A stretch of DNA of 64,000 nt from Penicillus capitatus (GCA_965649825.1 OZ287697.1:1226351-1290350), one strand, 5' to 3'; positions 15,378 to 62,222 are shown, counted from the first letter of the stretch. Numbers and translations: made by a program. Notes: generated by a model not told the origin, from the sequence alone.

Positions 15378-15381
15378 GTAG

Positions 15382-16190: not shown

Positions 16191-18201
16191 CCTTCTACGG
16201 AACTCAACGTGACTGGATTTGCGAAGCCTGGAAACTATACCGTTCTCATCAATTTCGATGAAGACATTCTAAAAGAGGAAGAGATCAATGTCACTGTGCA
16301 GAGCTGCACGATTGGCGAAGCCTCTTTAAGAGATGGCACATTTTGCGAGCCCTGCAACGCCGCCACTTACAACTTTGACTTGAAGGAAGACTCCAAGTGT
16401 CAGCCATGCCCCGACAACGGGAACTGTACAACGAAAGTGATCGTTCCGAAACAAGGGTACTGGAACAGTTCGCCGTGCTCTCCGCACATCCAGAGATGTC
16501 TGACGACCCATGCATGTGATGGCGAAATCAGAACCACCACTCTCCAGGAGATATCAGAGAACATTTCCATCTGCAGCATGAATGAATGGAACCTGGAGAC
16601 GCGTGATTCCGGTTCATATAATATCTGCGAATACAGACAAGCTCAGTGCGTTCAAGTGGCGATCGACGTTAGAATTCCCCGGGTCTCTGATCGGAAGTGT
16701 CCTGCATTGTTAGGGCCATTCGGGACCGCTCTGCGGTTCATGCGACGCAGGTTACGGAAAGGCGCAGTTCGTCTCGTGCGAGGAGTGCTTCTCAGATGCC
16801 GTAAATGTACTCCTCGTGCTTTTGTCTGTTTTGGTCTTCTTAATTCTGGTAGCGATCACAATGAGAGCGAATCTGGGCTCCGCAAACCCCGATTCGTCGG
16901 CTCGTAAGATGATGGTCGAGGTCTTCAAGGCAAGCAATTCCCTTCATCGTTTTGCACGATACCAGATTTTTTGTCAGATTGCGGTGAACTATGCCCAAGT
17001 GACGGCCGTGGCCGTTTCGATCAACGTGTCTTGGGATCTGAATCTGATCCGACTTTTCGAAGCTGCCGGTAACGACACGAAACATCGATTATAATCTGAC
17101 GCATTTAGATGTCTGTGCATTCTTGTAGAGCTTGTCAGTGGCGTCGTCGCGGATGCCATCGAACGGGCTGTGCATTGTCTTCTTCCCGACGGCGCCATCG
17201 TGGAGCGATCCGTTTTTGGCATCTTGATGGACATGGCTGCCGTCAGCATCGTCATCCTCATCTCCATCGTATTCTGGTTCACTGTCACGCCGTCCAGTCC
17301 TCGAGACTGGACATACCTCGCGAAGAGAGCGTTCCTCAGTGTCGTCGTCGTTCTTCATCTGGGCTACATCTCACTGACAAGCACCTTCATCAACATCCTC
17401 AACTGCATCGAGGTCAATGAACTGACGGAGACCATGGAAACGGCCACAACACAATACTGGACAGCAGACACCAGCATTCGATGCCACGAGGGATCACACG
17501 CGATGCTGGAACGCGCCGTGGGATGGCCCGGTCTGATCTTGCTCTCTCTGGGATTTCCTCTCATCACCGCGTGCGTCATCTCTCTGGGCAAACGGACGCA
17601 CAGGAGCGAAGGATGGATACAAGACCTCTTCGGTTTCATGTATCAATCCTACAAGGACAGTCACTGCTACTGGGAATGTGTCGTCATCGGACGGAAGGCC
17701 GTCATTGCTGGCGTTGTCGTTCTTGCCTATCCATTGGGAGCCAGTCTCCAAGTCATGTTTGCTGCCTTCGTCTTCACCGTCGCCCTCTACCTGCAAACAG
17801 CCTGTCGACCGTTCAGAAACGATCTCGATCTGCTGAACAACCTGGAAAGCTACTCCCTGCTCATATCGCTTCTGACGTTCATATCCAGTCTCTGCTTCGA
17901 TACGGATCGTCTCTCGTCGAGCGCCTGCCTGTCCATCGCTGTGGTAATATTGGTACTCAATCTGTTGTTCTTCTTCTTCCTGTTAACAATTCTGCTGAGA
18001 TCCTTTGCGGACCATCTCAGAGATGTGCTTACGAATCAGAATGTTTCATTTGATGCCGAAGCAAGTCGACTGCGTGTGTTGGCAATCTATCTTGTGGTTC
18101 ATCTGCCAGAATCTTTACGCAATGCGATTCGCATGTGGGCCAGTCGTCTTGCTGCACTCTATCGCAAACTTGAAAATGAAAACTACGAAACGAGGCCTTG
18201 A
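16191..18201 (+). pseudogene. Receptor B1: 3' half only (stalk end, Cys-rich module, membrane domain)
   Basis: Begins mid-stalk (PSTELNVTGFAKPGNY) directly after the LTR. Introns 16656-16713, 16930-16977 (GC-AG) and 17069-17128; last exon 17129-18201 ends LENENYETRP. Confidence 0.9.
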
Positions 18202-18339
18202 GCCTTTGCAGCTTTTGCATTCTTCCTTGACATGTCTGAACCCTCTTACTTAATCACACTGTTTTCTCGGGTCACACAAAAGCAGTTCGTTCACTGAAAC
18301 AATGACCATTATCGTTTCTTGCCATTATGTGACGATGCC

Positions 18340-18830
18340 GGAATGGAAGGCCGTCCTCGCAGTCGTGGTCGTCTTTTCTTATGAAATGGGTTCAGCCTCC
18401 ATGCTGTTCTTACGTCATCCGTCCTAATCGCACCCCTTCATCACTTCCAGACAGAATTGTCCCTACCACGAGGAGTTTGATTCCATCAGTAATGTAGACA
18501 GCCTTTCCATTCTGCTTTCATTACTCTCTCTCGTCTGCGACATCCTCTTTGGGGATGATCACACACCACAAGAGATCCGTGTGCTAGTCATTGTTTTCCT
18601 GCTCTGTATAAGCATTAGCTTTCTGTCTTTTTTGGCCTGTCTTGTTCTCTTTGCAGTGGATCTGGAAACGGTGCGTCGGGGAAAGAATTCATTCTTCGCC
18701 GACACATGCACATTTCGCATTCTCTGCGTGTATTTTTAATGCTTCTGTATTGATGTGAAAGATGCTTTAGTGCGATGAATCCATCATGGCAGATCTCGTC
18801 GCTCTGTATACTCCGAAATTTGAAGTTGCT
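18340..18830 (+). pseudogene. Decayed fragment of the receptor membrane-domain C-terminal half
   Basis: Translates with shifts to KAVLAVVVVFSYEMG...PYHEEFDSISNVDSLSILLSLL, matching the RKALLAVVVVFSYDLG...PYREEFDCLNDVESLSIMLSLL segment. Confidence 0.8.
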
Positions 18831-18949
18831 CTATCCTGGCGTACATTTCTTGCTGTGTGTCAAAATGAAAAGGGCGATTGCTTAACTTCTCCCAGCTTTC
18901 CTTGCCAGAATGATTTCGGGTGTCAAAGATACAAATAACTGTCAACTGG

Positions 18950-21900
18950 ATACCTGTTTAAACGGAAACGTCTCATTGTTGTGTGACGTTGTCTCCGTTC
19001 GTCTCTCTGTGTGCTGCGATATCTATCTCCTAGACATGAAGCGTAAGAGACAAATGTCTCACACTGCGAGAGTGACGTCTCGTTTCCGATTCCGGAAGAT
19101 GCACAAAGCAGTATGTTCCTGATGCTTTGAGTCGTCTGCGTAGTTTCTCTGTTCAGGACAAAGTGAGCATCGCCTTCGTCTATCAATCATCACGTCCTCT
19201 GTGATTACTGCAGATGTTTGAGCGATGCGACGATATGAATGTCATTTCTGAAAATTTAAAATTGGGCAGAATGCGAGAACGACGACGACGTCACTAACGC
19301 GACATCGTCAAAGATCTCACTCAGGTGTAGAATTACCATGTGTCCAATAAATCCGATAAACAAACGCGAGGTGCTCTGGTCGAAACTACTCAACTGACTG
19401 TCTAGCTTTGGAGGAATCCAAGCCTCGATATGCGGCAATTGTACGCAAGAAACAGTTCCGCGCTGAAGAACGCGTTTGTTTGCATTAAGCGCGATATGGT
19501 CGTCGAGCATCGGAATAGGGAGACCAATGAAAGAAGGTCTGCTCGATGGGGCACAACACAAAAGAAATAGCTCTCTCCGAGAGTTCGAATCTTGCAATGC
19601 CCTTGTCCAACCCATCGTAAAGCATACCTCACATCTCCGACCTCTCGGACTCTGATTGCCGACGCTAAAGGTTCGAGTACTTTTTCGCAACGCAGCCGAG
19701 CACATCTTCGGAGTGCATGAGAGGTGCATCCTTCCTTCCCCAGACGCAAACAGACGCCATGACTTGATCAGACGCACTTCGATCTTGAACAAAACACCTT
19801 CAGACGAGGGGCCGAGTGATAGATTGAATAGAAGATGGCAGTGGATGGAGTCCCGAGCCGCGAGGGTTGCCGAGTCATGTGACGAAGGAGATATGGTTCC
19901 TTCAGAGCATCCGCATCCTGGCGTGCAGGGTGCTCGTCAAGAGCGCTCTTGGCTTCGCCGCATCGAACGCGCTGCAGTTGATTTTGTGAATGAAGCACCC
20001 CACTCAAACAAGTTCAGTATCAGGTAGGGTAGGGTCGGCCATGATGCAATCGTTTGAATGCCACAATCCGTACGAATGCTTTTTGAAGAACCGAGGCGCC
20101 GAAGATGGAGACATCGCCGGGCGAACATCCTATGCGATGTGTTCGGTCAGTGCCGAGATCTCGACGCCAGCGTCGGCGACGGATACGAGAACCATCTGCG
20201 CACTCGCAGACGAAAATCTACCTCCGCCAGCCTAGGTGGTCTGTGGAAGGAGTTAAAACTCGCAACGCACTGCTCTGTTTGTCAACGCACCGTAATTTCT
20301 GCAGCCAAGACCTTGACTTAACACAGGCGCGAGGTGCATGCAGATCTCACGACTGGCGTTGGCGTTTTGGCGAACAGCGTCGGCCGTCACCAATGAGTGC
20401 GAGTACTCTAGACGCAGTTGTTGCTGGCGGTCGTCGATAGCTTGTGCAAGTATGCTTGTCTCGCAGAGATAGACCACCCCATAGGCGGTGAGCAAATCCA
20501 AACGTGACAGCCATGTATCCAACGTCGTCTTCGCCAGCGTTGGAGGGCGAGGAGCAGCGCATACATCATCATGTGATCATCACTCTGCGATTGTCGTTCC
20601 AGCCAACAGGATCCTTCTGTCTCGAGGACTTGATCTCTATCTCTGTCGGATGGGCGTCTGCATCGAGGTTCATTATGCTTCTTCTGTGACGTGACGCCGA
20701 AAGGAGAAGTTCAGAGCTTCGCGATTTAAGCGCGTTATCGTTTCTGAGAACGGTTGATTCTCTTATTCCTGTGAACACCAGGCGGCGCAGCTGCTCTGAA
20801 CGCAAGATTCCAGCCAACCCGTCAGCTTCCAGATGCTTTCCAATTGTGCGACGGTGGTTGCACGGTTCGTCGAGAGACTCGGCATTGACCATCAAGGACA
20901 TGCCTAGCGGGATTTCTCCCTCAATTCACGTATGTGACAAACACAGCATCATGGCAACACTCGTGTATCCGCAGATGGAAAGTGTTGGGACAAAAATGGC
21001 AATAGAGGTGACAGCTGACGCAGAGCGAAGGACAGAGGGCGGTACAGCGCACTAACGGACGCCTACTCACATACCGTCGCGATAGTTGCATGTCGCGGAG
21101 GGACCATCCCTGACCTGTTGCACTGCGTATGGCTGAGACAGATGCTGTGGGTTTAGAGGACAGAGGCCGATGCCGTCGATGTCAAGTGGACATTCACCTC
21201 GGTCGCACTGTTTGAAGCTACCGGTGACGATCACGACAATGCTTGAGCTGAGTGCAGGGTGCGTTCAGTTCTCTCCAGCGTTCATCGATGGTGTCACCTC
21301 TGAAGCTGTCAATCGTTCTGTGTGTGGACTGCATTCGGGAGACTGCCCCCTCAGAACGTTCCATCGGAAGCATCGTCCGCGACGTTGTAACCAATTGGGT
21401 TATCTTTGCGTTTGTTGTGTCTTGGCTTATCATCAAGTCCCGACAAAAGATGACCTCGGTGCTTCTGCTGCAGGTGGTTTGAGTGTTTTTTTGGATTGGA
21501 TGCTTTTACATCTCTCTTTTGACAAGATCGAGAGAGCGTCTAGACAGTCTAGGGTTTATCAATGAATGGATCGAAAAGTGAATGTCCCGTTTGGGGCACC
21601 CATCCGAGTCACTGCCAAGGCGGGGCACTACCCCATCTTCTTCCTGTGCGGCGCCATTCTTCACCAATACATTCTACAAATTCCGACAATTCTTTCGGGT
21701 GCTGGAAAAGGCACGCGATGGAGAGAGGTTCCGGTATCTGTCTTTGTAGCTTCCTCCGGTCCGCTTGGAACCGTGGGCATTCCAGAAGTAAGTGGTCTCT
21801 ATCTTCCAATGCAGCCCCACACGGACAAGCCGGTGATTCTGCCAGAGCTCCGAATCTGAAGAGGTACTGGTTCGAGGGAAAATGGTTGGCTGCGAATTGC

Positions 21901-24620
21901 GAGAGTCTTAAAGCCTGAGGTCTCTCAAGATACTTCCCTGGAAAGTGTCCACGCCGGAAATTTTGTCAGATAAGCGGTCAGATAATGACTGGTCAGTCTC
22001 TCTCTAATGTCTCTTTCCGCCTCACCGTTCAAGTAGTGCGAGATTCGATATTTGATCCACGATCTGTCCGGGGGATCCCTTTCGGCCCGCAGCTGCTGTC
22101 CTCTGTGATGGAAGTCGCGCGCCGCCACTCTGCCAATGCTAGAGAGAGCCCAGGTTTCCATTTCTGGGTTGCCCAGAAAATCGAGTGACCTTCCAGGGAC
22201 CAGTCAAGCAGCTCTTGCTGGATCTGGATGCTGACCTCTGAGACGTTGGTCCAACTGAGAGCTGCTGTTTGAATTCGACCCGAGTCCAGAATCAGGCCAA
22301 GGCTTTGTCTTCGGTTCTGAGCCATCTGGGCCGACAGCTTCCTTAGTGCGCTCAGACCATTTCGCAAGCCCACGAGAGCAGAGATCTCCCATGACGTCCA
22401 GTCAGGATCCCACCAGCTTTCACCATGTCGAATACCACCATGCGAAAGTCCCCAGCTAGTACCAAGGCGGTGGCGGGTTCGGTCTTTTTGCGTTGAGACA
22501 GTCAATATCCAGTCCGGGCGTTCGGAGACCGGGATCGGGCCGGAGCCTGATAAAAGGTCTATTTGGCGAGGAGGAATCGGGGACCAGGAGTGTATCTGTT
22601 GAGGTTGAATTTCCGGAGGTCTTCTGGGAGTAGCCCTCTGCCAGCGAGACCATGCGATTCTACGATAGCATTGACCCGCTGAGCGTTCTGATCTTGCTTG
22701 GTGAAACAGCGGGTTGGCCAGCACTCTATGTCTTCTTCTGGAGTCAAAGTACAGTGCTTGTTGCACAATTTGTTGTGCTGGCGGTCGAACTCCCGCGAGC
22801 GTGTACGCCGAGGGGTAGGAGGTGGTTCTGAACGTTCCAGTCAGCAGTAGGCATGCTTGTCGCATAGCTTTCTCCAGGGGGCCAGCTTTCAGCTCGTTGT
22901 ACGCTGCACTTTGCCAAACTTCTGCTCCATAGTAGGCCGCAGGTTCGATGACACGACTGACCAGTTTTTTCGACGGCTTCTGGTAACATGCTTCAGGTCG
23001 AGCCAGTCATTCGTCGGATCCAGTCCAGACGAGTGCGGACTTTCCCAGCTGCACTTGCCACTTGGGGGCTCCAGGACAGTGTCTCATCGAGCCAGACACC
23101 TAGGTAAAGCACGGCGGCTTTCCTTACGAGTTGCTGGCCGCGCAGGAATAGGGGAAGGGTGTCGCTTCTTCTTCTTTTCACAAATCTGATCTGAAAGCAT
23201 TTCTCCGGAGTGAAGACCAGTCCTCTATCTCGAGCCCAGGTATTCATGCGGTCGAGAGTCTCCTGGAGCTTGTTCTGGGCTACCTTTTCAGATGGGGCTG
23301 CGCTGAGAATCAAGATGTCGTCAGCATAGGCTTGGGCATGGATTCCTTCTAAATCGTCAGCTAACTCCAGGATCGGATCCATGCCTATTATGAAAAGCAG
23401 CGGGGATAAGGGGCTTCCCTGAGGGGTCCCGATGGACGGGTGGTGTGTGAAGCATCCCCCTTCGAGGTCCAGCTTGGCTTCTCTATTACCGAAGAAGGAT
23501 TGTATCCAGCGCATGAGGTAAGGGGGGTGTTCATGCGATCTAATGCATTCAGTACCGCGGTGGGTCTAATGCAGTCGAAAGCACCTTTGATGTCCAGGGT
23601 GACCCCATATACCTCGCGGCCTGCCCCTTGGTTCCGTTCAATGAAATCTGTAGATTCCACCAAAGCATCGGCCACTCCTCTCCCAACCCTGAATCCAAAC
23701 TGTCTGCAGGAGAAGCCGTTCTTGGATTCGATGAGCTGGGCCAGTCGATGTGCCGCAATCTGATGCACACATTTGGCAACGTGGTTTGAGTGTTTGTTCG
23801 TCGTCTTCTGTATCGGTCACATTTCTGTAAGCAAGACGTCGATCGACACCCTCAGCTGCATCGAAAAGCGCGATTTCATCACCGACGATGGCGATCGCGC
23901 AACAGACTGCTGGGCACTGGACGCTAGTATCAAATGCCATTAAAGATCACATGCCGTTTTGGCAGTTCTGGGACAGGCATTTCTTCTTCTCTCCGTCTCC
24001 GGTGTTCCTTCTGTCGCCGGATGCCTCATCGTCGAGAACATCGCAGACGAGTACAAAGAGGGATGGTGGATCTGCGACGTTTCTTGATGCTCTCTACCGT
24101 TCCTTCTCAGAGAGACTCGTTCTCTGGAAGTCCGTGATCGTGTCAAGAAAATCTCTTCTGGTCGCCATCTTTGTTTTCTGCTATTCCTTAGGCACGTATT
24201 CGCAGCAAGTGATGTCTGTCGTGTTGGTTCTCATATTTGCTTTCTATGAGCAGATGGCCTGCCGGTCCTCATCGTCTGAACTTGACATCCTCGATGAAAT
24301 GGAAAGCGCCTAGATTCTCATTTTTCCGCTCGCTTCTGTCTCGAGTGTCTTCTTCAGTGATGGACGGGTCACATCAGACGGGCATTACGTGCTTCATGAC
24401 CCACAGTGTTGTGCTTTGCGACCTTGCACTTCCGATTTGCTTTCTCTCCTTTCTCTCCATTTTTGTTGCGAGTGCCTCAAGATTGTCTTGATCAGAGAGG
24501 GCGTGGCTGTTGATGAACATGCTGGACCGTATCACACCATTAAGGTCTGTATGCTCACTTGTATCATTGCCGGTGTCAGAGGAGCTCTTTCGCTGTTCTC
24601 GGTCTGTGGCAAGGAATGAC
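18950..24620 (+). pseudogene. Old decayed receptor paralog (internally deleted), interrupted by a LINE
   Basis: Exon-2-like DNA at 19016-19043; GTGAGC...CTGCAG intron remnant followed by MFERCD (19214; compare IFEGCD); Cys-module-like TTGCACGGTTCGTCG (20858); clear membrane-domain remnants VTSEAVNRSV (about 21290) and LYRSFSERLVLWKSVIVSRKSLL (about 24090) with stops and frameshifts. The 5' extent is less certain. Confidence 0.7.
21489..23780 (-). mobile_element. 5'-truncated non-LTR retrotransposon (RT + degenerate RNase H-like + CCHC), copy 1
   Basis: 15-bp target-site duplication GTGGTTTGAGTGTTT (21474-21488 / 23781-23795); QFGFR, LDIKGAFD, GTPQGSPLS, YADD; C-terminal CPCG...DHLLLECP; short A tail; nonsense and frameshift lesions. 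Confidence 0.95.
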
Positions 24621-26091
24621 CGGCACAGATTCTCAGATACCTTGGAGGAACTTATTAAACTGTTAGGCCATTAGATGGATGTCAAACCATCTCGGTAGTA
24701 TCTGTTTCTATTTTTTACAATCTTTCATTTGCTACAGCCATCTTTCTGACGTAATGACAGTTGACTGTAAGGATTCTTGCATTTAGACAAATGTAGAAAC
24801 GTGTGACCGTAATGCTGAATGAAATGCTTGCCTAGAAACGGTCATTTCATACACAGAGCCTGGTATGCAGTGTGCCTCGTTCACGAGCATGGCCTGTTGC
24901 CATGAAGTAGTTGAAACACTTGATCTGAAGACACACAGAATCGCCGAAAGGTCTGTGTCTACTTTCTGAATGTCTTGGCTGTACGCCACGATCTGAAGTG
25001 TAGAGATTCTGCCATGTGCCGTGTCTTACTCAAATCAGATCTATCACTGAAATCCTCGCAAGAGAGTACTGCACCCAGAATAAACGTCATTGTGATCTGA
25101 TCGACTTATGCATGGTGTTTGGTCGAGTCTAAAAAGTGAGTTTCGCGTCCTTCAAAGCATGGACGCGGTCGAGCGCGTTTAGGACATAGATCAAGGCCAT
25201 GCAGGATCACACCTTCTAAGAAAGAGTACCGTCTCTGTGCTGTACTGCACAGGAAGGTCTCCAATACCGAACTCCGTAACTGTCAGACCAAATGACAGAT
25301 AGTCCAGTGGCAGGAGCACCTGACATTCTTCTCGTAATGCGAGTAAGCTGCAGAGGAAAGGGCACGCATCCACGAGCGATACTACTGTGTATCCGGTCAA
25401 AAGCGGCAGAACGCGCATAGCTATACGAAAGGCACGTCCACAGATATACCTCTGCTCAATGCGTTGGTTCTCAGTCGACCTTTGTTATCTTCAAACAACA
25501 TAACGGCATCAGGGGAGGGAACTCCGAACAGTAAGGGTCTCACGTGTTCCCACACTTGAAGGCGGACTCCCGTTGATCGCCTTTCTGTCAACAATCTGCT
25601 TCCGTTCTCTGCATAAAGACGGTGGACGTGAGTGCTGCGAGGCTAGAGCGAGTAAACGCGTACCTTCGGTGCTGACACTCCAGATGCACAGTCTCAGGCC
25701 AGATTCGCCGACGTCACGTAAGCGATAAGACAAAGTAGCAAAGCACGGTTCTATAACAGCGATAGCAGCGGTTGCTTTGACACTGTCATCAGGACATGCG
25801 ACTGTGGACGGCGCGGTCTTTCCCGAGTCAAATCATGATCTGTGGTTGTTCGCTGCATGTCAACAAGTGTGGCTCTGCTCGACCTGAAAAGACGTTCAGG
25901 GGTCAGCTCGACGAACAGACGCTGGAAGAGGCACGCTGCGTTAGTTCTCTGCCCCGTCGGGAGAACAAGGGACGCACGCGTGCATCATGCACACCGACGC
26001 GTGGTCGCTGAGTCAGTTGCGTAGCTGCTGCATCAGGAATATTCCTTGCCTCATCTTCAGGCGATTTTCATGCAACAGGCCTCGTCCCGAC

Positions 26092-48801: not shown

Positions 48802-48939
48802 GCCTTTGCAGCTTTTGCATTCTTCCTTGACATGTCTGAACCCTCTTACTTAATCACACTGTTTTCTCGGGTCACACAAAAGCAGTTCGTTCACTGAAAC
48901 AATGACCATTATCGTTTCTTGCCATTATGTGACGATGCC

Positions 48940-49430
48940 GGAATGGAAGGCCGTCCTCGCAGTCGTTTTCGTCTTTTCTTACGAAATGGGTTCTGCCTCC
49001 ATGCTGTTCTTACGTCATCCGTCCTAATCGCAACCCGTCATCACTTCCAGACAGAATTGTCCCTACAGCGAGGAGTTTGATTCCATCAGTAATGTAGACA
49101 GCCTTTCCATTCTGCTTTCATTACTCTCTTTCGTCTGCGACATCCTCTTTGGGGATGATCACGCACCACCTGAGATCCGTGTGCTAGTCATTGTTTTCCT
49201 GCTCTGTATAAACACTATCTTTCTGTCTTTTTGGCCTGTCTTGTTTCCTTTGTAGTGGATCTGGAAACGGTGCGTCGGGGAAAGAATTCATTCTTCGCCG
49301 ACACATGCACATTTCGCATTCTCTGCGTGTATTTTTAATGCTTCTGTATTGATGTGAAAGATGCTTTAGTGCGATGGATCTATCATGGCAGATCTCGTCG
49401 CTCTGTATACTCCAAAATTTGAAGTTGCTC
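48940..49430 (+). pseudogene. Decayed membrane-domain fragment (copy of 18340-18830)
   Basis: Collinear copy with scattered substitutions. Confidence 0.78.
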
Positions 49431-49549
49431 TATCCTGGCGTACATTTCTTGCTGTGTGTCAAAATGAAAAGGGCGATTGCTTAACTTCTCCCAGCTTTCC
49501 TTGCCAGAATGATTTCGGGTGTCAAAGATACAAATAACTGTCAACTGGA

Positions 49550-52500
49550 TACCTGTTTAAACGGAAACGTCTCATTGTTGTGTGACGTTGTCTCCGTTCG
49601 TCTCTCTGTGTGCTGCGATATCTATCTCCTAGACATGAAGCGTAAGAGACAAATGTCTCACACTGCGAGAGTGACGTCTCGTTTCCGATTCCGGAAGATG
49701 CACAAAGCAGTATGTTCCTGATGCTTTGAGTCGTCTGCGTAGTTTCTCTGTTCAGGACAAAGTGAGCATCGCCTTCGTCTATCAATCATCACGTCCTCTG
49801 TGATTACTGCAGATGTTTGAGCGATGCGACGATATGAATGTCATTTCTGAAAATTTAAAATTGGGCAGAATGCGAGAACGACGACGACGTCACTAACGCG
49901 ACATCGTCAAAGATCTCACTCAGGTGTAGAATTACCATGTGTCCAATAAATCCGATAAACAAACGCGAGGTGCTCTGGTCGAAACTACTCAACTGACTGT
50001 CTAGCTTCTTGGAGGAATCCAAGCCTCGATATGCGGCAATTGTACGCAAGAAACAGTTCCGCGCTGAAGAACGCGTTTGTTTGCATTAAGCGCGATATGG
50101 TCGTTGAGCATCGGAATAGGGAGACCAATGAAAGAAGGTCTGCTCGATGGGGCACAACACAAAAGAAATAGCTCTCTCCGAGAGTTCGAATCTTGCAATG
50201 CCCTTGTCCAACCCATAGTAAAGCATACCTCACATCTCCGACCTCTCGGACTCTGATTGCCGACGCTAAAGGTTCGAGTACTTTTTCGCAACGCAGCCGA
50301 GCACATCTTCGGAGTGCATGAGAGGTGCATCCTTCCTTCCCCAGACGCAAACAGACGCCATGACTCGATCAGACGCACTTCGATCTTGAACAAAACACCT
50401 TCAGACGAGGGGCCGAGTGATAGATTGAATAGAAGATGGCAGTGGATGGAGTCCCGAGCCGCGAGGGTTGCCGAGTCATGTGACGAAGGAGATATGGTTC
50501 CTTCAGAGCATCCGCATCCTGGCGTGCAGGGTGCTCGTCAAGAGCGCTCTTGGCTTCGCCGCATCGAACGCGCTGCAGTTGATTTTGTGAATGAAGCACC
50601 CCACTCAAACAAGTTCAGTATCAGGTAGGGTAGGGTCGGCCATGATGCAATCGTTTGAATGCCACAATCCGTACGAATGCTTTTTGAAGAACCGAGGCGC
50701 CGAAGATGGAGACATCGCCGGGCGAACATCCTATGCGATGTGTTCGGTCAGTGCCGAGATCTCGACGCCAGCGTCGGCGACGGATACGAGAACCATCTGC
50801 GCACTCGCAGACGAAAATCTACCTCCGCCAGCCTAGGTGGTCTGTGGAAGGAGTTAAGACTCGCAACGCACTGCTCTGTTTGTCAACGCACCGTAATTTC
50901 TGCAGCCAAGACCTTGACTTAACACAGGCGCGAGGTGCATGCAGATCTCACGACTGGCGTTGGCGTTTTGGCGAACAGCGTCGGCCGTCACCAATGAGTG
51001 CGAGTACTCTAGACGCAGTTGTTGCTGGCGGTCGTCGATAGCTTGTGCAAGTATGCTTGTCTCGCAGAGATAGACCACCCCATAGGCGGTGAGCAAATCC
51101 AAACGTGACAGCCATGTATCCAACGTCGTCTTCGCCAGCGTTGGAGGGCGAGGAGCAGCGCATACATCATCATGTGATCATCACTCTGCGATTGTCGTTC
51201 CAGCCAACAGGATCCTTCTGTCTCGAGGACTTGATCTCTATCTCTGTCGGATGGGCGTCTGCATCGAGGTTCATTATGCTTCTTCTGTGACGTGACGCCG
51301 AAAGGAGAAGTTCAGAGCTTCGCGATTTAAGCGCGTTATCGTTTCTGAGAACGGTTGATTCTCTTATTCCTGTGAACACCAGGCGGCGCAGCTGCTCTGA
51401 ACGCAAGATTCCAGCCAACCCGTCAGCTTCCAGATGCTTTCCAATTGTGCGACGGTGGTTGCACGGTTCGTCGAGAGACTCGGCATTGACCATCAAGGAC
51501 ATGCCTAGCGGGATTTCTCCCTCAATTCACGTATGTGACAAACACAGCATCATGGCAACACTCGTGTATCCGCAGATGGAAAGTGTTGGGACAAAAATGG
51601 CAATAGAGGTGACAGCTGACGCAGAGCGAAGGACAGAGGGCGGTACAGCGCACTAACGGACGCCTACTCACATACCGTCGCGATAGTTGCATGTCGCGGA
51701 GGGACCATCCCTGACCTGTTGCACTGCGTATGGCTGAGACAGATGCTGTGGGTTTAGAGGACAGAGGCCGATGCCGTCGATGTCAAGTGGACATTCACCT
51801 CGGTCGCACTGTTTGAAGCTACCGGTGACGATCACGACAATGCTTGAGCTGAGTGCAGGGTGCGTTCAGTTCTTTCCAGCGTTCATCGATGGTGTCACCT
51901 CTGAAGCTGTCAATCGTTCTGTGTGTGGACTGCATTCGGGAGACTGCCCCCTCAGAACGTTCCATCGGAAGCATCGTCCGCGACGTTGTAACCAATTGGG
52001 TTATCTTTGCGTTTGTTGTGTCTTGGCTTATCATCAAGTCCCGACAAAAGATGACCTCGGTGCTTCTGCTGCAGGTGGTTTGAGTGTTTTTTTGGATTGG
52101 ATGCTTTTACATCTCTCTTTTGACAAGATCGAGAGAGCGTCTAGACAGTCTAGGGTTTATCAATGAATGGATCGAAAAGTGAATGTCCCGTTTGGGGCAC
52201 CCATCCGAGTCACTGCCAAGGCGGGGCACTACCCCATCTTCTTCCTGTGCGGCGCCATTCTTCACCAATACATTCTACAAATTCCGACAATTCTTTCGGG
52301 TGCTGGAAAAGGCACGCGATGGAGAGAGGTTCCGGTATCTGTCTTTGTAGCTTCCTCCGGTCCGCTTGGAACCGTGGGCATTCCAGAAGTAAGTGGTCTC
52401 TATCTTCCAATGCAGCCCCACACGGACAAGCCGGTGATTCTGCCAGAGCTCCGAATCTGAAGAGGTACTGGTTCGAGGGAAAATGGTTGGCTGCGAATTG

Positions 52501-55220
52501 CGAGAGTCTTAAAGCCTGAGGTCTCTCAAGATACTTCCCTGGAAAGTGTCCACGCCGGAAATTTTGTCAGATAAGCGGTCAGATAATGACTGGTCAGTCT
52601 CTCTCTAATGTCTCTTTCCGCCTCACCGTTCAAGTAGTGCGAGATTCGATATTTGATCCACGATCTGTCCGGGGGATCCCTTTCGGCCCGCAGCTGCTGT
52701 CCTCTGTGATGGAAGTCGCGCGCCGCCACTCTGCCAATGCTAGAGAGAGCCCAGGTTTCCATTTCTGGGTTGCCCAGAAAATCGAGTGACCTTCCAGGGA
52801 CCAGTCAAGCAGCTCTTGCTGGATCTGGATGCTGACCTCTGAGACGTTGGTCCAACTGAGAGCTGCTGTTTGAATTCGACCCGAGTCCAGAATCAGGCCA
52901 AGGCTTTGTCTTCGGTTCTGAGCCATCTGGGCCGACAGCTTCCTTAGTGCGCTCAGACCATTTCGCAAGCCCACGAGAGCAGAGATCTCCCATGACGTCC
53001 AGTCAGGATCCCACCAGCTTTCACCATGTCGAATACCACCATGCGAAAGTCCCCAGCTAGTACCAAGGCGGTGGCGGGTTCGGTCTTTTTGCGTTGAGAC
53101 AGTCAATATCCAGTCCGGGCGTTCGGAGACCGGGATCGGGCCGGAGCCTGATAAAAGGTCTATTTGGCGAGGAGGAATCGGGGACCAGGAGTGTATCTGT
53201 TGAGGTTGAATTTCCGGAGGTCTTCTGGGAGTAGCCCTCTGCCAGCGAGACCATGCGATTCTACGATAGCATTGACCCGCTGAGCGTTCTGATCTTGCTT
53301 GGTGAAACAGCGGGTTGGCCAGCACTCTATGTCTTCTTCTGGAGTCAAAGTACAGTGCTTGTTGCACAATTTGTTGTGCTGGCGGTCGAACTCCCGCGAG
53401 CGTGTACGCCGAGGGGTAGGAGGTGGTTCTGAACGTTCCAGTCAGCAGTAGGCATGCTTGTCGCATAGCTTTCTCCAGGGGGCTAGCTTTCAGCTCGTTG
53501 TACGCTGCACTTTGCCAAACTTCTGCTCCATAGTAGGCCGCAGGTTCGATGACACGACTGACCAGTTTTTCGACGGCTTCTGGTAACATGCCCCAGGTCG
53601 AGCCAGTCATTCGTCGGATCCAATCCAGACGAGCGCGGACTTTCCCAGCTGCACTTGCCACTTGGGGGCTCCAGGACAGTGTCTCATCGAGCCAGACACC
53701 TAGGTAAAGCACCGCGGCTTTCCTTACGAGTTGCTGGCCGCGCAGGAATAGGGGAAGGGTGTCGCCTCTTCTTCTTCTTTTCACAAATCTGATCTGAAAG
53801 CATTTCTCCGGAGCGAAGACCAGTCCTCTGTCTTGAGCCCAGGTATTCATGCGATCGAGAGTCTCCTGGAGCTTGTTCTGGGCTACCTTTTCAGATGGGG
53901 CTGCGCTGAGAATCAAGATGTCGTCAGCATAGGCTTGGGCATGGATTCCTTCTAAATCGTCAGCTAACTCCAGGATCGGATCCATGCCTATTATGAAAAG
54001 CAGCTGGGATAAGGGGCTTCCCTGAGGGGTCCCGATGGACGGGTGGTGTGTGAAGCATCCCCCTTCGAGGTCCAGCTTGGCTTCTCTATTACCGAAGAAG
54101 GATTGTATCCGGCGCATGAGGTAAGGGGGTGTTCATGCGATCTAATGCATTCAGTACCGCGGTGGGTCTAATGCTGTCGAAAGCACCTTTGATGTCCAGG
54201 GTGACCCCATATACCTCGCGGCCTGCCCCTTGGTTCCGTTCAATGAAATCTGTAGATCCACCAAAGCATCGGCCACTCCTCTCCCAACCCTGAATCCAAA
54301 CTGTCTGCAGGAGAAGCCGTTCTTGGATTCGATGAGCTGGGCCAGTCGATGTGCCGCAATCTGATGCACACATTTGGCAACGTGGTTTGAGTGTTTGTTC
54401 GTCGTCTTCTGTATCGGTCACATTTCTGTAAGCAAGACGTCGATCGACACCCTCAGCTGCATCGAAAAGCGCGATTTCATCACCGACGATGGCGATCGCG
54501 CAACAGACTGCTGGGCACTGAACGCTAGTATCAAATGCCATTAAAGCTCACATGCCGTTTTGGCAGTTCTGGGACAGACATTTCTTCTTCTCTCCGTCTC
54601 CGGTGTTCCTTCTGTCGCCGGATGCCTCATCGTCGAGAACATCGCAGACGAGTACAAAGAGGGATGGTGGATCTGCGACGTTTCTTGATGCTCTCTACCG
54701 TTCCTTCTCAGAGAGACTCGTTCTCTGGAAGTCCGTGATCGTGTCAAGAAAATCTCTTCTGGTCGCCATCTTTGTTTTCTGCTATTCCTTAGGCACGTAT
54801 GCGCAGCAAGTGATGTCTGTCGTGTTGGTTCTCATATTTGCTTTCTATGAGCAGATGGCCTGCCGGTCCTCATCGTCTGAACTTGACATCCTCGATGAAA
54901 TGGAAAGCGCCTAGATTCTCATTTTTCCGCTCGCTTCTGTCTCGAGTGTCTTCTTCAGTGATGGACGGGTCACATCAGACGGGCATTACGTGCTTCATGA
55001 CCCACAGTGTTGTGCTTTGCGACCTTGCACTTCCGATTTGCTTTCTCTCCTTTCTCTCCATTTTTGTTGCGAGTGCCTCAAGATTGTCTTGATCAGAGAG
55101 GGCGTGGCTGTTGATGAACATGCTGGACCGTATCACACCATTAAGGTCTGTATGCTCACTTGTATCATTGCCGGTGTCAGAGGAGCTCTTTCGCTGTTCT
55201 CGGTCTGTGGCAAGGAATGA
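49550..55220 (+). pseudogene. Old decayed receptor paralog interrupted by a LINE (copy of 18950-24620)
   Basis: Near-identical to the first copy, including the LINE insertion site. Confidence 0.7.
52090..54381 (-). mobile_element. 5'-truncated non-LTR retrotransposon, copy 2
   Basis: Same 15-bp target-site duplication (52075-52089 / 54382-54396); 495-aa ORF 54117-52630 with PQGSPLS, YADD, LTGTFRTTS and an RNase H-like tail. Confidence 0.95.
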
Positions 55221-56692
55221 CCGGCACAGATTCTCAGATACCTTGGAGGAACTTATTAAACTGTTAGGCCATTAGATGGATGTCAAACCATCTCGGTAGT
55301 ATCTGTTTCTATTTTTTACAATCTTTCATTTGCTACAGCCATCTTTCTGACGTAATGACAGTTGACTGTAAGGATTCTTGCATTTAGACAAATGTAGAAA
55401 CGTGTGACCGTAATGCTGAATGAAATGCTTGCCTAGAAACGGTCATTTCATACACAGAGCCTGGTATGCAGTGTGCCTCGTTCACGAGCATGGCCTGTTG
55501 CCATGAAGTAGTTGAAACACTTGATCTGAAGACACACAGAATCGCCGAAAGGTCTGTGTCTACTTTCTGAATGTCTTGGCTGTACGCCACGATCTGAAGT
55601 GTAGAGATTCTGCCATGTGCCGTGTCTTACTCAAATCAGATCTATCACTGAAATCCTCGCAAGAGAGTACTGCACCCAGAATAAACGTCATTGTGATCTG
55701 ATCGACTTATGCATGGTGTTTGGTCGAGTCTAAAAAGTGAGTTTCGCGTCCTTCAAAGCATGGACGCGGTCGAGCGCGTTTAGGACATAGATCAAGGCCA
55801 TGCAGGATCACACCTTCTAAGAAAGAGTACCGTCTCTGTGCTGTACTGCACAGGAAGGTCTCCAATACCGAACTCCGTAACTGTCAGACCAAATGACAGA
55901 TAGTCCAGTGGCAGGAGCACCTGACATTCTTCTCGTAATGCGAGTAAGCTGCAGAGGAAAGGGCACGCATCCACGAGCGATACTACTGTGTATCCGGTCA
56001 AAAGCGGCAGAACGCGCATAGCTATACGAAAGGCACGTCCACAGATATACCTCTGCTCAATGCGTTGATTCTCAGTCGACCTTTGTTATCTTCAAACAAC
56101 ATAACGGCATCAGGGGAGGGAACTCCGAACAGTAAGGGTCTCACGTGTTCCCACACTTGAAGGCGGACTCCCGTTGATCGCCTTTCTGTCAACAATCTGC
56201 TTCCGTTCTCTGCATAAAGACGGTGGACGTGAGTGCTGCGAGGCTAGAGCGAGTAAACGCGTACCTTCGGTGCTGACACTCCAGATGCACAGTCTCAGGC
56301 CAGATTCGCCGACGTCACGTAAGCGATAAGACAAAGTAGCAAAGCACGGTTCTATAACAGCGATAGCAGCGGTTGCTTTGACACTGTCATCAGGACATGC
56401 GACTGTGGACGGCGCGGTCTTTCCCAAGTCAAATCATGATCTGTGGTTGTTCGCTGCATGTCAACAAGTGTGGCTCTGCTCGACCTGAAAAGACGTTCAG
56501 GGGTCAGCTCGACGAACAGACGCTGGAAGAGGCACGCTGCGTTAGTTCTCTGCCCCGTCGGGAGAACAAGGGACGCACGCGTGCATCATGCACACCGACG
56601 CGTAGTCGCTGAGTCAGTTGCGTAGCTGCTGCATCAGGAATATTCCTTGCCTCATCTTCAGGCGATTTTCATGCAACAGGCCTCGTCCCGAC

Positions 56693-56752: not shown

Positions 56753-59700
56753 ATGCGACGCCGTTTCCTTGGTTTGCTGCTGACGCTCGTCGCCTTTGGC
56801 GCAAGTGCGACCGCGTTCGTCTGCCGGAGGTCTCACCTCCGCCGAGCTTTGGCCGCAGAAACGGCAGAAGATGCCTCGAGCACTTATGTTTCTACAAAGA
56901 TTCTTAGCTCAGAACCGTCCGCAGTCCCAGAAAGAAAGGCATCTGCACCGCCTAGTGCAAAAGAGTCTGCCTCGTTCCCGACGAAGCACTCGCACAGTAC
57001 AGCTCCGCCCCTCACGTCCGAGACGCGCGAGACTGCAGAGAAAGAACGCCCATCTGTGGCTGGAAGAGGTCGGAGTGAGAGCCGTTCTCTGCGCCAGGAC
57101 GATGGCCGCGACGATAATCTTAAAAGTAAGGAAGGCCCTTTGCTGTCTTCGAGAACACCTGCTTGACGCCGGCGCTCTTGGTTTTCGCAGGCGTTCCTTG
57201 TTCGCTCAGCGAACGAACCATCGAAGAGCACCTGAACGAAACGACGAGAACGTGGCGTATCAACCGTTCGATTCTTAACGACGTCGAAGATCCTATCCAA
57301 GTCATTGTCAACTGTACGAAGCCAGGCGACGTCCTCTCCTTCAGTCCGAAGCGCAGAATCCGGCCGTCTCCGCCCATCGTCATACCATGGCCATTGACGT
57401 TGACTGCCCCAGTGAGCAGTTCCGAACTCGAAGAAGGCGTGTTCCCCCGTGCCGATACAAAGACGACCTTCACCTGTCCTAATAGAGGAGAGGGTGTGTT
57501 CCTGGTGAAGTGAGCTTCGAATTCCCCCATCCGCTGTTGTCTGACGTCGATGTCGCCTTTAGTTCGACAGGTGTCCTTTTCGCCAATCTGATCTTTGAGG
57601 GATGCGATTTCACTGCAGCGAACAGCAATGAAGACGCCATCGTCAGAGTCGTCGACGACGACTGTGCGACGACTCGTGCAGACGATCAGCTGCGTCTGCA
57701 CCACGTCGATTTCCGATACAACAGCCTCGCCGAGAACAACGCCATCCGAGTGCACTCACCATCGTGCTTAAAGCTGGAACTCGTCGACCTTGGTTTCGAG
57801 AACAATACCTGCAGCGGTCCATGCATCGTCTTCCCGTCCAATCAAAGCAGTCGGCTGCGCGACATCAGAGTCCGGAACATCACGTCGTCGGGAGAAGCTG
57901 CCGACGCCACGACCGTGTTTTGGGGTCCTCCTCGTTCGAAGATGAACGTCACTCGGCTGACAGCGGCCGACAACACGATCCAGATCTTCAGCATCGAAGA
58001 CGGCACACTGGTGCTAAACCACTCGAAGCTGACGAACAACAGCGCGACAGTTGGAAGTCCAGTCTATTTGGCAAAGTCCAATGGAACATTCGAAAACGTC
58101 AGCTTCGTTGGAAACGGTGCCACTCACAGCGCCGGATCTCTCATGTCGGACAACTCAACGATCCGCATTAATAACTGCACCTTCGAGGAGGGCAATTCCG
58201 CCGAATTCGGCGGGTTCGTCGACGCCGAAGAACATTCTCTGGTGACCATCAGAGACTCGAACTTCAGTCGTGGGAAAGCGAAGGACGGAGGATGTCTTCG
58301 AGTACATCTCTCAAATCTCACTCTTCATAACGTGACGCTGCGAGAGTGTCATTCCGTGGTCGACGGAGCGGCGATTCGTCTGTCCAATGCGACTGCCAAC
58401 ATCAAAAACACTACGCTGGATTCGAACAGAGCGGGCGACGATGGAGGATGCCTGTATGCAGAGTTCTCCAATGTTACCGGAGACGACTGGACCGTGAAGA
58501 AGAACTCGGCTGGCGATCACGCAGGCGGACTCCGGGTGCGACTCGAGACGAATCTCAGTCTCGCCAACTCCGTTTTCCTCGACAACGAGGCAGACAGAGG
58601 GGGAGCCGTGTCTCAGGAGCTGGCTTCCGTCGTCAACTTCACAGATGTCTCATTCTCTGGCAACGTTGCTGCGACCGAGGGCGGTGCGTTCTACATAACC
58701 AATTCGACGACGATCCTCAGCAGCTGCACTTTCAATGACGGCAGAGCTGATGATGGCGGTATCCTGTTCGCAAGGAAGATGACCACAGTGAACATTTCCT
58801 CGTCGATCATGAAGCATGGCACTGCGAGACGCGGGGGGTGCCTGCTCGCTCTCGACGGGTCGGTCAGAGTTGCGAATTCGACGATGGAGAACTGCACGTC
58901 CAAGGAAGACGGCGGGGCCATGCACCTGCGCAACATCGCAGCACACATCTCGAATTCCAGTTTTCTGTCGAATAGCGCAGAGGATAGTGGCGGAGCCGTC
59001 TTCGCCGATGAGAAGACCATTCTCGAAGGTCGGGAATGGTGCGTGAAAAACAACAGCGCCGGGGGCGACGGAGGTGGCGTTCTGTTGAAGCAGTCCACGA
59101 TCCAAGTGAAGGACTCTCTCTTCCGAAACAACTCTGCTCTCCACGGCGGCGCTGTGCATCAGAGCTCTTCCTCAAATGGAACGTTCTTAAACGCGACGAT
59201 GGTAAACAACACGTGCTCAAGGAATGGAGGCGCCTTCTTCACCGTCGATTCGTCAAGGCTGAATATCTCTAACTCTAAGTTTCGTGGTGGAAGCGCAGAA
59301 GACGACGGCGGGTTCGTTGCAGCCATTTCGAAGAGCTCTGTCGATCTGGAGCACACCAACATGACGAACGGAAACGCAACGAATGGAGGAGCCGTTTTCC
59401 TCTCCGACAGTCTCTTCAAAGGGGATCATCTCAACGTCACCGAGTGTTCCGCCAGTTCAACGGGCGGAGGATTCTCCTTCGAATCCGAAAACCTGGAAAT
59501 GCTCACAGTTCAGCTTAATCACTCCATCGTGCAGGACAACACAGCTCGTCTAGGAGGTGAGGATCCGCAGCCGGTCTCTGATGCATTCGATCTGTTTTAT
59601 CAGGTGGCCTGTATGTGAAAAACAGCAGTGGACACCTCAACTGCTCGGAGGGCAACTCCGATTGCTTCGTCGTCACTATGCTGAACACGACTTTCGTGAA

Positions 59701-62222
59701 CAACAGCGCTGCTTATGCAGGAGGCGCCATCTTCACGAGCAGCTCTGTGAACGTTGGTGTCATTTGTGACAGTGAGACAGACGATGGCGCTGAGAATTCA
59801 TCGTTGTCCGTCTGTCCATGGTGGATAGGCAACACGGCCGAAACATATGGTCATGTCGTTGCTTCGTTCGCATCACAAGTCAACGTGACCGTCAATGAAA
59901 GGGGCATCACAGGTTCAGAGGAGGATGGCCCGTACATATACAGAAGCGGATCGCCCCTCTCCATCAGTCTGGAGATCCGAGATGGTTTTGATCAAGGTCC
60001 TGCGGTGGGAAGAAATGGCCGTGTGGTTTCCAGCACCATCTCATCTCCAAACAGCCTCTTCTCGGGAAATCAGACAATCCTTTTGGGCTCTCTTTCTACG
60101 GAACTCAACGTGACTGGATTTGCGAAGCCTGGAAACTACACCGTTCTCATCAATTTCGATGAAGACATTCTAAAAGAGGAAGAGATCAATGTCACTGTGC
60201 AGAACTGCACGATTGGCGAAGCCTCTTTAAGAAATGGCACACTTTGCGAGCCCTGCAACGCCGCCACTTACAACGTTGACTTGGATGATGAAGACTCCGA
60301 GTGTCGGCCATGCCCCGACAACGGGAACTGTACAACGAAAGTGATCGTTCCGAAACAAGGGTACTGGCACAGTTCGCCGTGCTCTCCGCACATCCAGAGA
60401 TGTCTGACGACCCATGCATGTGATGGCGATAACAGAACCACCACTCTGCAGGAAATGTCAGAGAACATGGACAACTGTAGCATCAGCAACAAGGAAATCG
60501 AAGAATACCAACAGGGACAGTGTGAAAATGCAAGTTTGATATTCTGATTTTCTCAGGTGTTGATGGTCTCTGTTGTGCATGCAGGGTTATACTGGTCCAC
60601 TCTGTGGATCTTGTATCAGTTCACATGGCAAATCTCACTCTCATCTCTGCGAAGAATGTCGATCGGACGGTGCTGACGTCGTCTTAGTCATGCTGTCATT
60701 TCTTGTTCTGATGGGGTTGTCCGGCATCACCATCAGAAGCAACCTCATCTCTGTCTTTTCATCGAAGCAACAAACACAAGGTTCTCAGTCTTCTGCTGCC
60801 TCCACCAGCACCCACACGTTGCCGTCCGAGAGGAGAATCGAACTGGCAGTTATGGAAGAGCTCAGAGAAGAAGGATCGACTTCTTCGCACAATCAAGAAG
60901 CTGAGCCTTGTCAATCTTCTGAGGACGCAGAGCTCGGCAAATGGAAGGCCGTCGAGCTCTTTAAGGTCTTGAACCTCTCTATTTCCTATTTTGTCTATGC
61001 ATCCTAACTGTTCTTCAGATAACAGTGAACTTTCTGCAGGTCACAGCCATAGCTGTGGCAATCGATGCTCAGTGGACATTCGCGTTAATCGCACTCTTCC
61101 AGACTGCAGGTGACTGGAAGACAACTCTGTCGGACAGTCTCATGACACGTGATGTGTTCTGCAGAGTTCGTCAGCGCCATCACATCAGAAGCTGTAAATC
61201 GATCTGTCGACTGCCTTATCCCAGCAGAAGCTTCTCTGCATCGTTCAATCGACGGTACACTTGTGGATGTATTGCAGCCGTTTGCGTGCACCCTTGTCTT
61301 TGCTGTTTTCTGGCTAGTGATCAAGATCAGAAGCAACAAGCCTTTGATGTACATGTTGAAGCAGTGTGTTCTTAGTGCACTCGTTGTCTGTTATATCAGC
61401 TACATCTCCATCACCAAGACACTCGTCAACATCCTCAACTGCGTTGAGGTCTATGATTCAAATGACACAACAACAGATTACACAACAAAAGTTTACTGGA
61501 CAGTGGACACCAGCGTTGAGTGCTACGAAGGATCCCATGCTGCCTTGGCTTTTTTGCTGGCATGGCCATTCCTCTTCATCTTCACCCTTGGATTTCCCCT
61601 GGCGATCGCATACCTCATCGGTAAGAATGTGACAGAGGATTACAAGGACGGATGGATCTATGCCGTCGCCGGTTTCGTATACCGATCCTACAGCCAGAAG
61701 TACATCTTCTGGGAGTCTGTGATCATGTCCAGGAAGGCCCTTCTCACAGTCGTGGTTGTCTTCTCGTACGATCTGGGTCCCAACATCCAGGCAGTCTTGG
61801 CATCCTTCGTCTTCATCGTGGCACTTTTCTTCCAGATGAAATGTCGTCCTTACCGCGAAGAATTTGATTGTCTTAATGATGTGGAGAGCCTTTCTATTAT
61901 GCTTTCCTTACTCACCTTTGTCAGTAGCATCTTCTTCAGTGACTATCGTGTATCGTATGGGGTTCGTGTGTTGATGAGCGTTTTCCTGCTCTGCGCAAAC
62001 ACCCTCTTCTTTCTCTACCTGTTGGCCCTTTTAGTGACATTTGCGGCTGAGTACCTGAGAAGTGTATTGGTCAGAGAAGGAGTTCACTCATCTTCAGCAA
62101 AAGGCACATTTCGCATTCTCCGTGCCTATCTTGTCGATTACCTCTTCGCTCGTGCGATAGCTGCCATGATCCGATGGGTCAACAAAGGAAGATCTCGTCG
62201 ATACGGCCGTTCTGCAGTTTAA
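56753..62222 (+). CDS. Receptor C2, same architecture, 1,713 aa if intron 4 is spliced
   Basis: Exons 56753-57125, 57191-57509, 57563-59556, 59604-60529, 60585-60965, 61019-61109, 61165-62222 sum to 5,142 nt in frame. The intron-4 donor is AAT|GCAAGT, weaker than AAG|GCAAGT in C1. Confidence 0.87.

Follow-up and report, generated by a model that had tools for sequence, protein, structure and literature searches.

The window analysed here, that is, the whole 64,000-nucleotide stretch of Penicillus capitatus DNA (GCA_965649825.1 OZ287697.1:1226351-1290350; G+C about 52%), carries a tandem array of genes for large, predicted cell-surface proteins. Four full genes (C1, D, B2 and C2) and one remnant (B1) lie on the plus strand within 46 kb (Table 1; positions are counted from the first nucleotide of the window). 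An earlier sequence-only reading had placed the array at 16191-62222 and had regarded its members as paralogs that combine interchangeable modules, namely a linker (X or Y), a stalk (P or Q) and a membrane domain (B, C or D). Family fragments listed in Table 1 to the left of the remnant show that the array exceeds those limits.

The proteins, of about 1,700 amino acids, share a single order of parts: a signal peptide, an N-domain of about 100 residues, a PMP-type beta-helix, a loop bounded by cysteines, a beta stalk, a Cys-rich neck and a domain of nine transmembrane (TM) helices. The beta-helix region, of about 700 residues, is predicted to be right-handed and built from PMP-type repeats; C1 has 15 GG[AGCS][ILVMAF] motifs between residues 473 and 935. 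Its Chlam_PMP (PF02415) score of 18.9 bits compares with a Pfam cut-off of 20.6, and full-length relatives reach 95.4 bits for Chlam_PMP (Bryopsis P0098) and 102.6 bits for Beta_helix (PF13229; Caulerpa P0047). Alignment with more distant paralogs shows that the "linker" is a loop of variable length between two nearly invariant cysteines, with many forms. The predicted structure of exon 4, which encodes loop, stalk and neck, is poor (mean predicted local distance difference test, pLDDT, 50), and within it only the stalk, modelled as all-beta, is of moderate confidence. The Cys-rich neck is EGF-like and gives a weak ephrin-receptor-like Pfam match. The membrane part consists of one TM helix, an acidic, serine-rich loop of about 90 residues and then eight helices, and 54 of the 57 N-glycosylation sequons of C1 lie ahead of the first TM helix. 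Judged from the sequences, the proteins would reside at the plasma membrane, with the beta-helix binding wall or external glycans or ligands and the 9-TM part transducing or conducting.

The module combinations described by the sequence-only reading were reproduced: X-P-C for C1, Y-P-C for C2, Y-P-D for D, X-Q-B for B2 and ?-P-B for B1. C1 and B2 thus share linker X, and C2 and D share linker Y; B2 has stalk Q, and the other four (C1, C2, D and B1) have stalk P. Membrane types B, C and D are found within the window, and a fourth, E, lies just outside it. The array contains a 30.6-kb tandem duplication, in which 16723-33412 (copy 1) and 47323-63969 (copy 2, ending about 30 bases short of the window's right end) are 97.0-97.7% identical by self-blastn (97.69% over 12.4 kb and 97.03% over 4.1 kb). 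The sole break in this alignment, 29121-29279 against 59724-59841, is the X-versus-Y linker. The spacers, about 7 kb long (the 19.8-26.5 kb region), differ between the copies at about 35 sites, being about 99.5% identical for C1/C2 and B1/B2 alike, and the observation that positional duplicates carry different ectodomain modules between near-identical spacers was borne out.

The history recorded along these genes is not a single one. Sliding identity places the four full genes at 90-100% over their upstream part, in interleaved patches; this part starts at the promoter and extends to the linker in B2 and to the stalk end in the C and D genes. Further downstream, the C genes show about 75% identity to D and about 50% to B. 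Sites informative for the four-taxon topologies before position 29320 fall into all three splits (77 for S3, 30 for S1 and 28 for S2), and these 135 sites form 22 runs where 79.6 ± 5.0 are expected; after 29320 a single split dominates (172 / 7 / 7). The pairwise homoplasy index (PHI), among the recombination tests that the sequence-only reading had suggested, was 0.367 against 0.587 ± 0.009 in permuted data (z = -25); in 2000 permutations the observed value was never reached. The test is decisive, and recombination between the paralogs is strongly supported.

Synonymous divergence (dS) changes accordingly along the genes. Between C and D, the beta-helix has values of 0.10-0.14 and the stalk of 0.01-0.05, against 1.1-1.3 (up to 1.33) for the Cys-rich part and 1.07 for the membrane domain; over the paralogs as a whole, the ectodomain halves show values of 0.05-0.15 and the membrane halves values above 1. 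The low 5′ and high 3′ values indicate that the 5′ portions have been homogenised by interlocus gene conversion and that the 3′ portions are old lineages. One recent tract joins C1 and B2, which over about 955 nt differ at four positions; its end coincides exactly with the start of the Q stalk of B2, and 44 consecutive sites at 28933-29296 group C1 with B2 and C2 with D. One such tract explains the linker difference between C1 and C2, whether X entered C1 or Y entered C2. The C-type stalk of B1 is a second conversion event, and two or three events account for all five combinations. The linker and stalk boundaries do not coincide with exon limits: exon 4 (29001-29968) contains the start of the X/Y difference (about 29130) and also its end, together with the start of the P/Q difference (about 29293-29313). 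The point from which C and D diverge (about 29590-29680) is likewise inside this exon.

The ratio of non-synonymous to synonymous change (dN/dS), which the sequence-only reading had named as a check, did not favour diversification. Pairwise Nei-Gojobori estimates lie at 0.20-0.74 in all segments with useful counts, at 0.45-0.63 for X against Y loops and at 0.20-0.25 for the membrane domain, with no excess of non-synonymous change. At the resolution of segments in four sequences, there is no sign of diversifying selection.

Table 1. Coordinates of the features of the window, with the evidence on which each rests.
Feature	Position	Strand	Basis
Distant family member, 5′ part (N-domain and beta-helix), running off the window's left edge	1..1612	-	amino-acid identity of 50% (exon-2 domain) and about 25% (beta-helix) by tblastn with the gene models; ORF 1298-1720 (-)
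B-type membrane-domain fragment, pseudogene relic, ORFs broken over several frames	3392..4372	+	87.8% nucleotide identity to B1/B2; 89.6% amino-acid identity to B2
Divergent paralog, 5′ end (signal peptide, N-domain, first beta-helix turns), cut by left LTR	5163..6425	+	about 80% nucleotide and 55% amino-acid identity to C1/D/B2/C2
Outer LTR retrotransposon, Ty3/gypsy type	6426..16193	+	LTR repeat search; ORFs
Inner LTR retrotransposon, nested	10480..15377	-	identical LTRs; Pfam
B1 remnant	16194..18201	+	sliding identity, ORFs, duplication boundary
Spacer 1, with relic membrane-domain fragments 18347-18820 and 23767-24589 (+)	18202..25337		tblastn, ORFs
C1 gene (X-P-C), 7 exons, 1727 aa, intact	26152..31661	+	gene model; translation without internal stops
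Conversion tract C1=B2, recent, containing the X loop	28337..29293	+	difference lists, split runs, alignment
D gene (Y-P-D), 1722 aa, intact	36032..41527	+	gene model
D patch distinguishing the window's D from that of the second assembly	37827..38817	+	pairwise comparison
B2 gene (X-Q-B), 1681 codons, TGA replacing Trp540	43435..48801	+	gene model
Spacer 2, duplicate of spacer 1	48802..55938		self-comparison, ORFs
C2 gene (Y-P-C), 1713 aa, intact	56753..62222	+	gene model
Exon 7 copies	C1 30604-31661, D 40482-41527, B2 47729-48801	+	gene models

C1, D, B2 and C2 are each modelled with seven exons and six introns at homologous positions, in agreement with the identical intron positions that had been claimed for the paralogs. 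All 24 modelled introns measure 46-65 nt, 20 with GT-AG and four with GC-AG borders (intron 4 of C1, 29969-30023, and of C2, 60530-60584; intron 6 of D, 40428-40481; intron 5 of B2, 47530-47577), and TATA boxes lie about 60 nt 5′ of the start codons, that of C1 at about 26092-26098. The first intron in these models (26525-26589 in C1) is a predicted one of 62-65 nt with the form GTAAG...CAG, in favour of which an exon-1 frameshift common to all copies was rejected; on this reading of the sequence, exon 1 would be spliced as modelled. All copies have long antisense open reading frames (ORFs), of 146-169 aa, across from their beta-helix repeats (28048-28557, 37932-38441, 45329-45838 and 58650-59159, all on the minus strand). 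They are most likely a by-product of the codon composition of the repeat and not genes.

Some copies are being eroded by retrotransposon insertions and by a nonsense mutation. The only defect of B2 is a single in-frame TGG-to-TGA change (45167-45169). A sequencing error is unlikely, since a second assembly, described below, shows no difference from B2 across this region. The use of TGA as a sense codon was rejected on the basis of the deviant codes of other ulvophytes, in which TAA and TAG, but as far as is known not TGA, have taken on a new meaning. B1, which the sequence-only reading had counted as a paralog, does carry a P stalk and a B membrane domain, but it is a truncated remnant and not a whole gene, starting directly after the right long terminal repeat (LTR) of the outer retrotransposon. 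Its first part, 16194-16520, covers a stalk end and Cys-rich stretch of C type and is 95-100% identical to C1; a neck unique to B1 follows at 16520-16700, and exons 5-7 are of B type.

The outer retrotransposon has 160-nt LTRs at 6426-6585 and 16034-16193 that are 98% identical, and its putative gag, protease, reverse transcriptase (RT) and integrase ORFs were read by eye from the translations. Nested within it, the inner element has 181-nt LTRs at 10480-10660 and 15197-15377 and Pfam matches to RVT_1, RNase H, integrase and aspartyl protease; its LTRs are 100% identical, and the insertion is therefore very recent. On its left, the outer element is bordered by gene sequence from about residue 170 of the beta-helix exon, and on its right by the stalk end. 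These flanks are not contiguous in the gene; roughly 2.6 kb of coding sequence between them is gone, which suggests recombination between elements or a deletion. Each spacer also holds a non-LTR-type RT fragment within a relic family gene (22029-23768 and 52630-54541, both minus strand). The copy in unit 2 keeps a 495-aa ORF (52630-54117, minus strand), on which the Pfam RVT_1 match was obtained, and the copy in unit 1 is frameshifted into ORFs of 278, 173 and 126 aa. The relic membrane-domain fragments of spacer 1 have their duplicates in unit 2 at 48947-49315 (for 18347-18820) and 54368-55190 (for 23767-24589), as found by tblastn. Diversification driven by RT, as by a diversity-generating retroelement, was considered and rejected, given that the RTs of the window belong to LTR and non-LTR retrotransposons.

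A second assembly allows the array to be compared with itself. Genes identical to some ORFs of the window are present on a 576,620-bp metagenome contig in ENA (ERZ25074695:ctg340394_13x_l), where two adjoining loci, L004 and L003, cover the genes of the window; a 441-aa ORF of D is identical to protein P0035 of the public collection. Three blocks are 100% identical: 38700-50285 corresponds to L004 (11.6 kb, from the 3′ part of D through B2, with its TGA, into spacer 2), 20591-29890 to L003 1-9300 (9.3 kb, including the X-P-C junction) and 60700-64000 to L003 9550-12849 (3.3 kb). The order on the contig is a C copy with a long Y loop, D, B2, spacer-1-type sequence, a further C copy with the 5′ X-P part of C1 and a mostly C2-like 3′ part, and then the E gene. 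At about 29.97-30.06 kb, this second C copy changes back and forth between the state of C1 and that of C2 over distances of tens of bases. E, which combines an X loop and a P stalk with the fourth membrane type, lies at L003 15461-20948, just past the position of the window's right end. The contig adds further states, X-P-E, long-Y-P-C and the C1/C2 hybrid. The upstream region of E and its 5′ part are 94.9% identical to those of D, so that the array seems to be a duplicated B-C-D/E triplet; in its present form it looks like a doubled triplet with a 30.6-kb period, grown by segmental duplication. The D copies of the window and the contig are identical except for 44 sites in one patch (Table 1), 34 of which show the states of C1, C2 or B2, a comparison that relies on both assemblies being correct. 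The comparison covered L004 and L003, from the 3′ half of the contig's first C copy onwards and without its B1 region; the membrane ORF of C1, the B1 ORF and the RT ORF of unit 2 had no entry in the public collection.

Either the window and the contig represent two haplotypes or strains set apart by conversion tracts and unequal exchange, or one of the two assemblies is partly chimeric. The Ostreobium genome is reported as diploid, with 1.29% heterozygosity (bioRxiv 10.1101/2020.07.21.211367), and its reported G+C of 52.4%, against 40.4% for Caulerpa, agrees with that of the window. If the present alga is related, the two-haplotype reading fits that diploidy and a heterozygosity of about 1.3%.

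Taken together, these data make it probable that a tandem array has been remodelled by interlocus gene conversion, the module combinations being footprints of a few tracts with no designed shuffling system behind them. The array would have grown by duplication of the B-C-D/E triplet. Non-allelic homologous recombination (gene conversion and probably unequal crossing-over) would then keep the promoter and the 5′ 3.1-3.5 kb of the genes nearly identical, with tracts halting where homology ends, at the loop, the stalk or the start of the Cys-rich neck, and with deeply diverged, old lineages persisting 3′ of the tract ends. Occasionally a loop or stalk variant would be carried across, as in the tract of about 1 kb shared by B2 and C1, which may have brought loop X into a C gene. 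The outcome would be a set of probably co-regulated proteins with nearly the same beta-helix and different membrane domains.

Several observations weigh against this interpretation or loosen it. The two assemblies disagree on which position of the array holds which C variant, and the second C copy of the contig is a fine-scale mosaic of C1 and C2; an assembly or consensus artefact could underlie some of the order seen in either the window or the contig. The comparison rests on four full genes, so the direction and number given for the events are tentative, and a dN/dS averaged over segments could miss a handful of loop residues under positive selection. That a more distant relative has Y-type loops as well (the genes P0038 and P0039 of L001, an array on another contig) hints that the loop dimorphism is old. 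Finally, the divergent paralog at 5163-5921 reads straight through the position of the exon-1 intron; an intron has either been gained or lost, or the four models treat a shared frameshift as an intron.

The proposal of the sequence-only reading was that the array is a recombination-diversified recognition locus, sensing self and non-self, pathogens or substrates, in which recombination is selected for new combinations of ectodomain modules and membrane outputs. Recombination, for its part, is real and apparently ongoing, as the incongruent segments show; the loop closed by two conserved cysteines varies in length and has many forms across the paralogs, its Y type recurring in P0038/P0039; the second assembly holds X-P-E and long-Y-P-C; and the family is large and predicted to be glycosylated and exposed on the cell surface. 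Diversified recognition was not supported. The ectodomains are homogenised, not diversified, dN/dS stays within 0.2-0.7 throughout, X-versus-Y loops included, and two or three events suffice for all combinations. Such a locus would join a variable recognition part to a conserved anchor, and the reverse was seen: the ectodomains are 90-100% identical and the membrane domains 50-75%, so that the variable end is the membrane domain and not the presumed ligand-binding end. B1 is a remnant, B2 carries a nonsense codon, and no dedicated diversification machinery was found in the window, whose RTs are borne by retrotransposons. A locus of this kind is unlikely, and a role in sensing self/non-self or pathogens is purely speculative. 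In a siphonous alga, it is conceivable, at long odds, that conversion moves an old, maintained set of loops (X, short Y, long Y and others) among receptors that each join the same beta-helix to a different 9-TM output, whose fold has neither a solved nor a curated relative, serving self-recognition of extruded cytoplasm, compatibility of gametes or thalli, or the sensing of wall damage or microbes. The positive evidence for recognition consists of recombination and the variable loop, and we give the idea little weight.

An assembly artefact, in which near-identical tandem copies or diploid haplotypes were joined or polished into a chimeric consensus, would explain the lack of colinearity between the window and the one public contig with these genes, in which the 100% blocks follow a different order. 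It would also agree with spacers that are about 99.5% identical over about 7 kb, with a contig coverage that, by its name, is only 13x, and with the alternation of C1-like and C2-like states in the contig's second C copy. The junctions themselves speak otherwise. At the X/P and X/Q boundaries, the partners are only 40-55% identical, and a misjoin based on overlap cannot have produced these junctions. The X-P-C junction and the sequence from the 3′ part of D through B2, including the position of the TGA, are identical in the two assemblies, X-P is also found in a third gene, E, and the conversion patches, of at most 1 kb, are far below the length of long reads. Such an artefact is therefore an unlikely source of the mosaics. 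Recombination within the conserved introns, that is, exon shuffling, would be in keeping with the conserved intron positions and with the boundary of the B1/B2 duplication (16723/47323), which falls at the junction of intron 4 and exon 5. As the points of divergence for X/Y, P/Q and C/D all lie within exon 4, and introns of 46-65 nt are a small target for recombination, exon shuffling is very improbable; with boundaries inside an exon, it is not what formed the linker and stalk combinations.

The genes belong to a wider family. An exhaustive search of a library of 1.84 billion proteins with a hidden Markov model of the membrane domain returned 6047 relatives at E up to 1e-3. Names were looked up for 20 of the matches: 16 belong to Caulerpa lentillifera and two to Bryopsis sp. 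KO-2023, in line with a bryopsidalean (siphonous) green alga as the most likely source; these Caulerpa and Bryopsis proteins have 1.4-3.4 thousand residues, and the three that were scanned carry Beta_helix and/or Chlam_PMP repeats. Proteins such as EP00210 P004162 and GMH45542.1 of these two algae are true members of the family, with membrane-domain E-values from 1e-58 to 1e-114 and N-terminal Beta_helix and Chlam_PMP repeats, and are annotated as hypothetical. Six of the Caulerpa homologs have near-consecutive gene numbers (P0071 g3760, P0067 g3773, P0048 g3776, P0096 g3781, P0063 g3785 and P0078 g3787), which suggests that tandem arrays are perhaps conserved across the Bryopsidales and may be the rule in the family. 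Further arrays, with 75-82% nucleotide identity and genes in both orientations, were observed at L001 (ERZ26696514:ctg303634, 496 kb) and at L002 (460-482 kb of ctg340394). A word-indexed search with the whole of C1 was dominated by bacterial and archaeal proteins with PMP repeats and was repeated with the non-repetitive 3′ part. A scan of JGI metagenomes found no close relatives. Through the word-indexed search came a 2116-aa JGI metagenome protein of ciliate-like composition, which is 22% identical to C1 over 76% of its length, with the same order of parts by eye. A text search by a few terms of the genome papers on Caulerpa, Ostreobium, Bryopsis and Halimeda returned nothing on the family, and the statement of the sequence-only reading that no such locus has been described for it appears correct within that scope. 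The family is uncharacterised and expanded in siphonous green algae.

The AlphaFold (AF2) model of exon 7, based on an alignment of 64 sequences, has a pLDDT of 91.2 and a predicted TM-score (pTM) of 0.84. Foldseek against the PDB gave a best E of 0.5 and TM-scores of at most 0.25 normalised by the query and 0.30 by the target, and a profile search of PDB sequences with the membrane domain gave no match. The Pfam model TRP (PF06011) is matched below its threshold, exon 7 of B2 scoring 21.5 bits (E 1.2e-4, profile positions 278-400) against a gathering score of 28.5. The C and D copies do not match it, and the window's copies of the domain pass no Pfam model. Among the 64 relatives, 13 match TRP at E up to 0.01 (best E 6.8e-8), Bryopsis P0098 at 23.1 bits. 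The 9-TM domain thus appears to be a widespread fold that is not yet described.

Like fungal TRP-like, Flc and Pkd2 proteins (PF06011), the proteins of the array have a large extracellular N-terminal part followed by about nine TM helices, and weak matches recur. On the other side, both the window proteins and Bryopsis P0098 stay below the gathering score, and C and D show no match at all. A distant kinship of the domain with Flc/Pkd2-like proteins may be taken as a lead from sequence comparison, not as a result. The beta-helix resembles that of the chlamydial Pmp family (Chlam_PMP), a multi-copy, polymorphic family with GGA(I/L/V)-type and FxxN-type repeats in a right-handed beta-helix. Chlamydial Pmp proteins are bacterial type-V autotransporter adhesins with a C-terminal beta-barrel, whereas the genes of the window are spliced and eukaryotic and encode a signal peptide, sequons, a Cys-rich neck and an alpha-helical 9-TM domain; a Pfam scan of the proteins found no autotransporter domain. 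Among eukaryotes, trichomonads have expanded families of surface proteins with Pmp-type repeats, the Pmp-like and BspA-like proteins, which have a single C-terminal TM helix. They differ from the window proteins in having no 9-TM domain and no stalk and neck and in belonging to an unrelated lineage. According to two studies, these trichomonad proteins mediate adherence (PMC6701047; bioRxiv 10.1101/454884).

Tandem clusters shaped by interlocus gene conversion and unequal crossing-over are familiar from plant Cf/RLP and NLR genes and from the var, SRS and VSG families of parasites. The array shares with them tandem paralogs, mosaics of tracts with incongruent histories, pseudogene copies among transposable elements and haplotypes that differ by conversion patches. 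Unlike in those systems, it is the extracellular half that is homogenised here and the membrane half that holds the old diversity; there is no excess of non-synonymous change, and the genes belong to siphonous green algae and to another protein family. We know of no link of this algal family to immunity or antigenic variation.

Concerted evolution by gene conversion in a tandem array is a textbook mechanism, and no new kind of system needs to be invoked. Arrays of this type in eukaryotic metagenomes may differ between assemblies, and caution is required when "module shuffling" is read from a single contig. The present array provides a nucleotide-resolution record of a large, uncharacterised family of giant surface proteins that join a PMP-type beta-helix to a 9-TM domain. 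The homogenised promoters and ectodomains, set against ancient membrane halves, predict co-regulated paralogs that would meet the same ligand and differ in signalling or transport.

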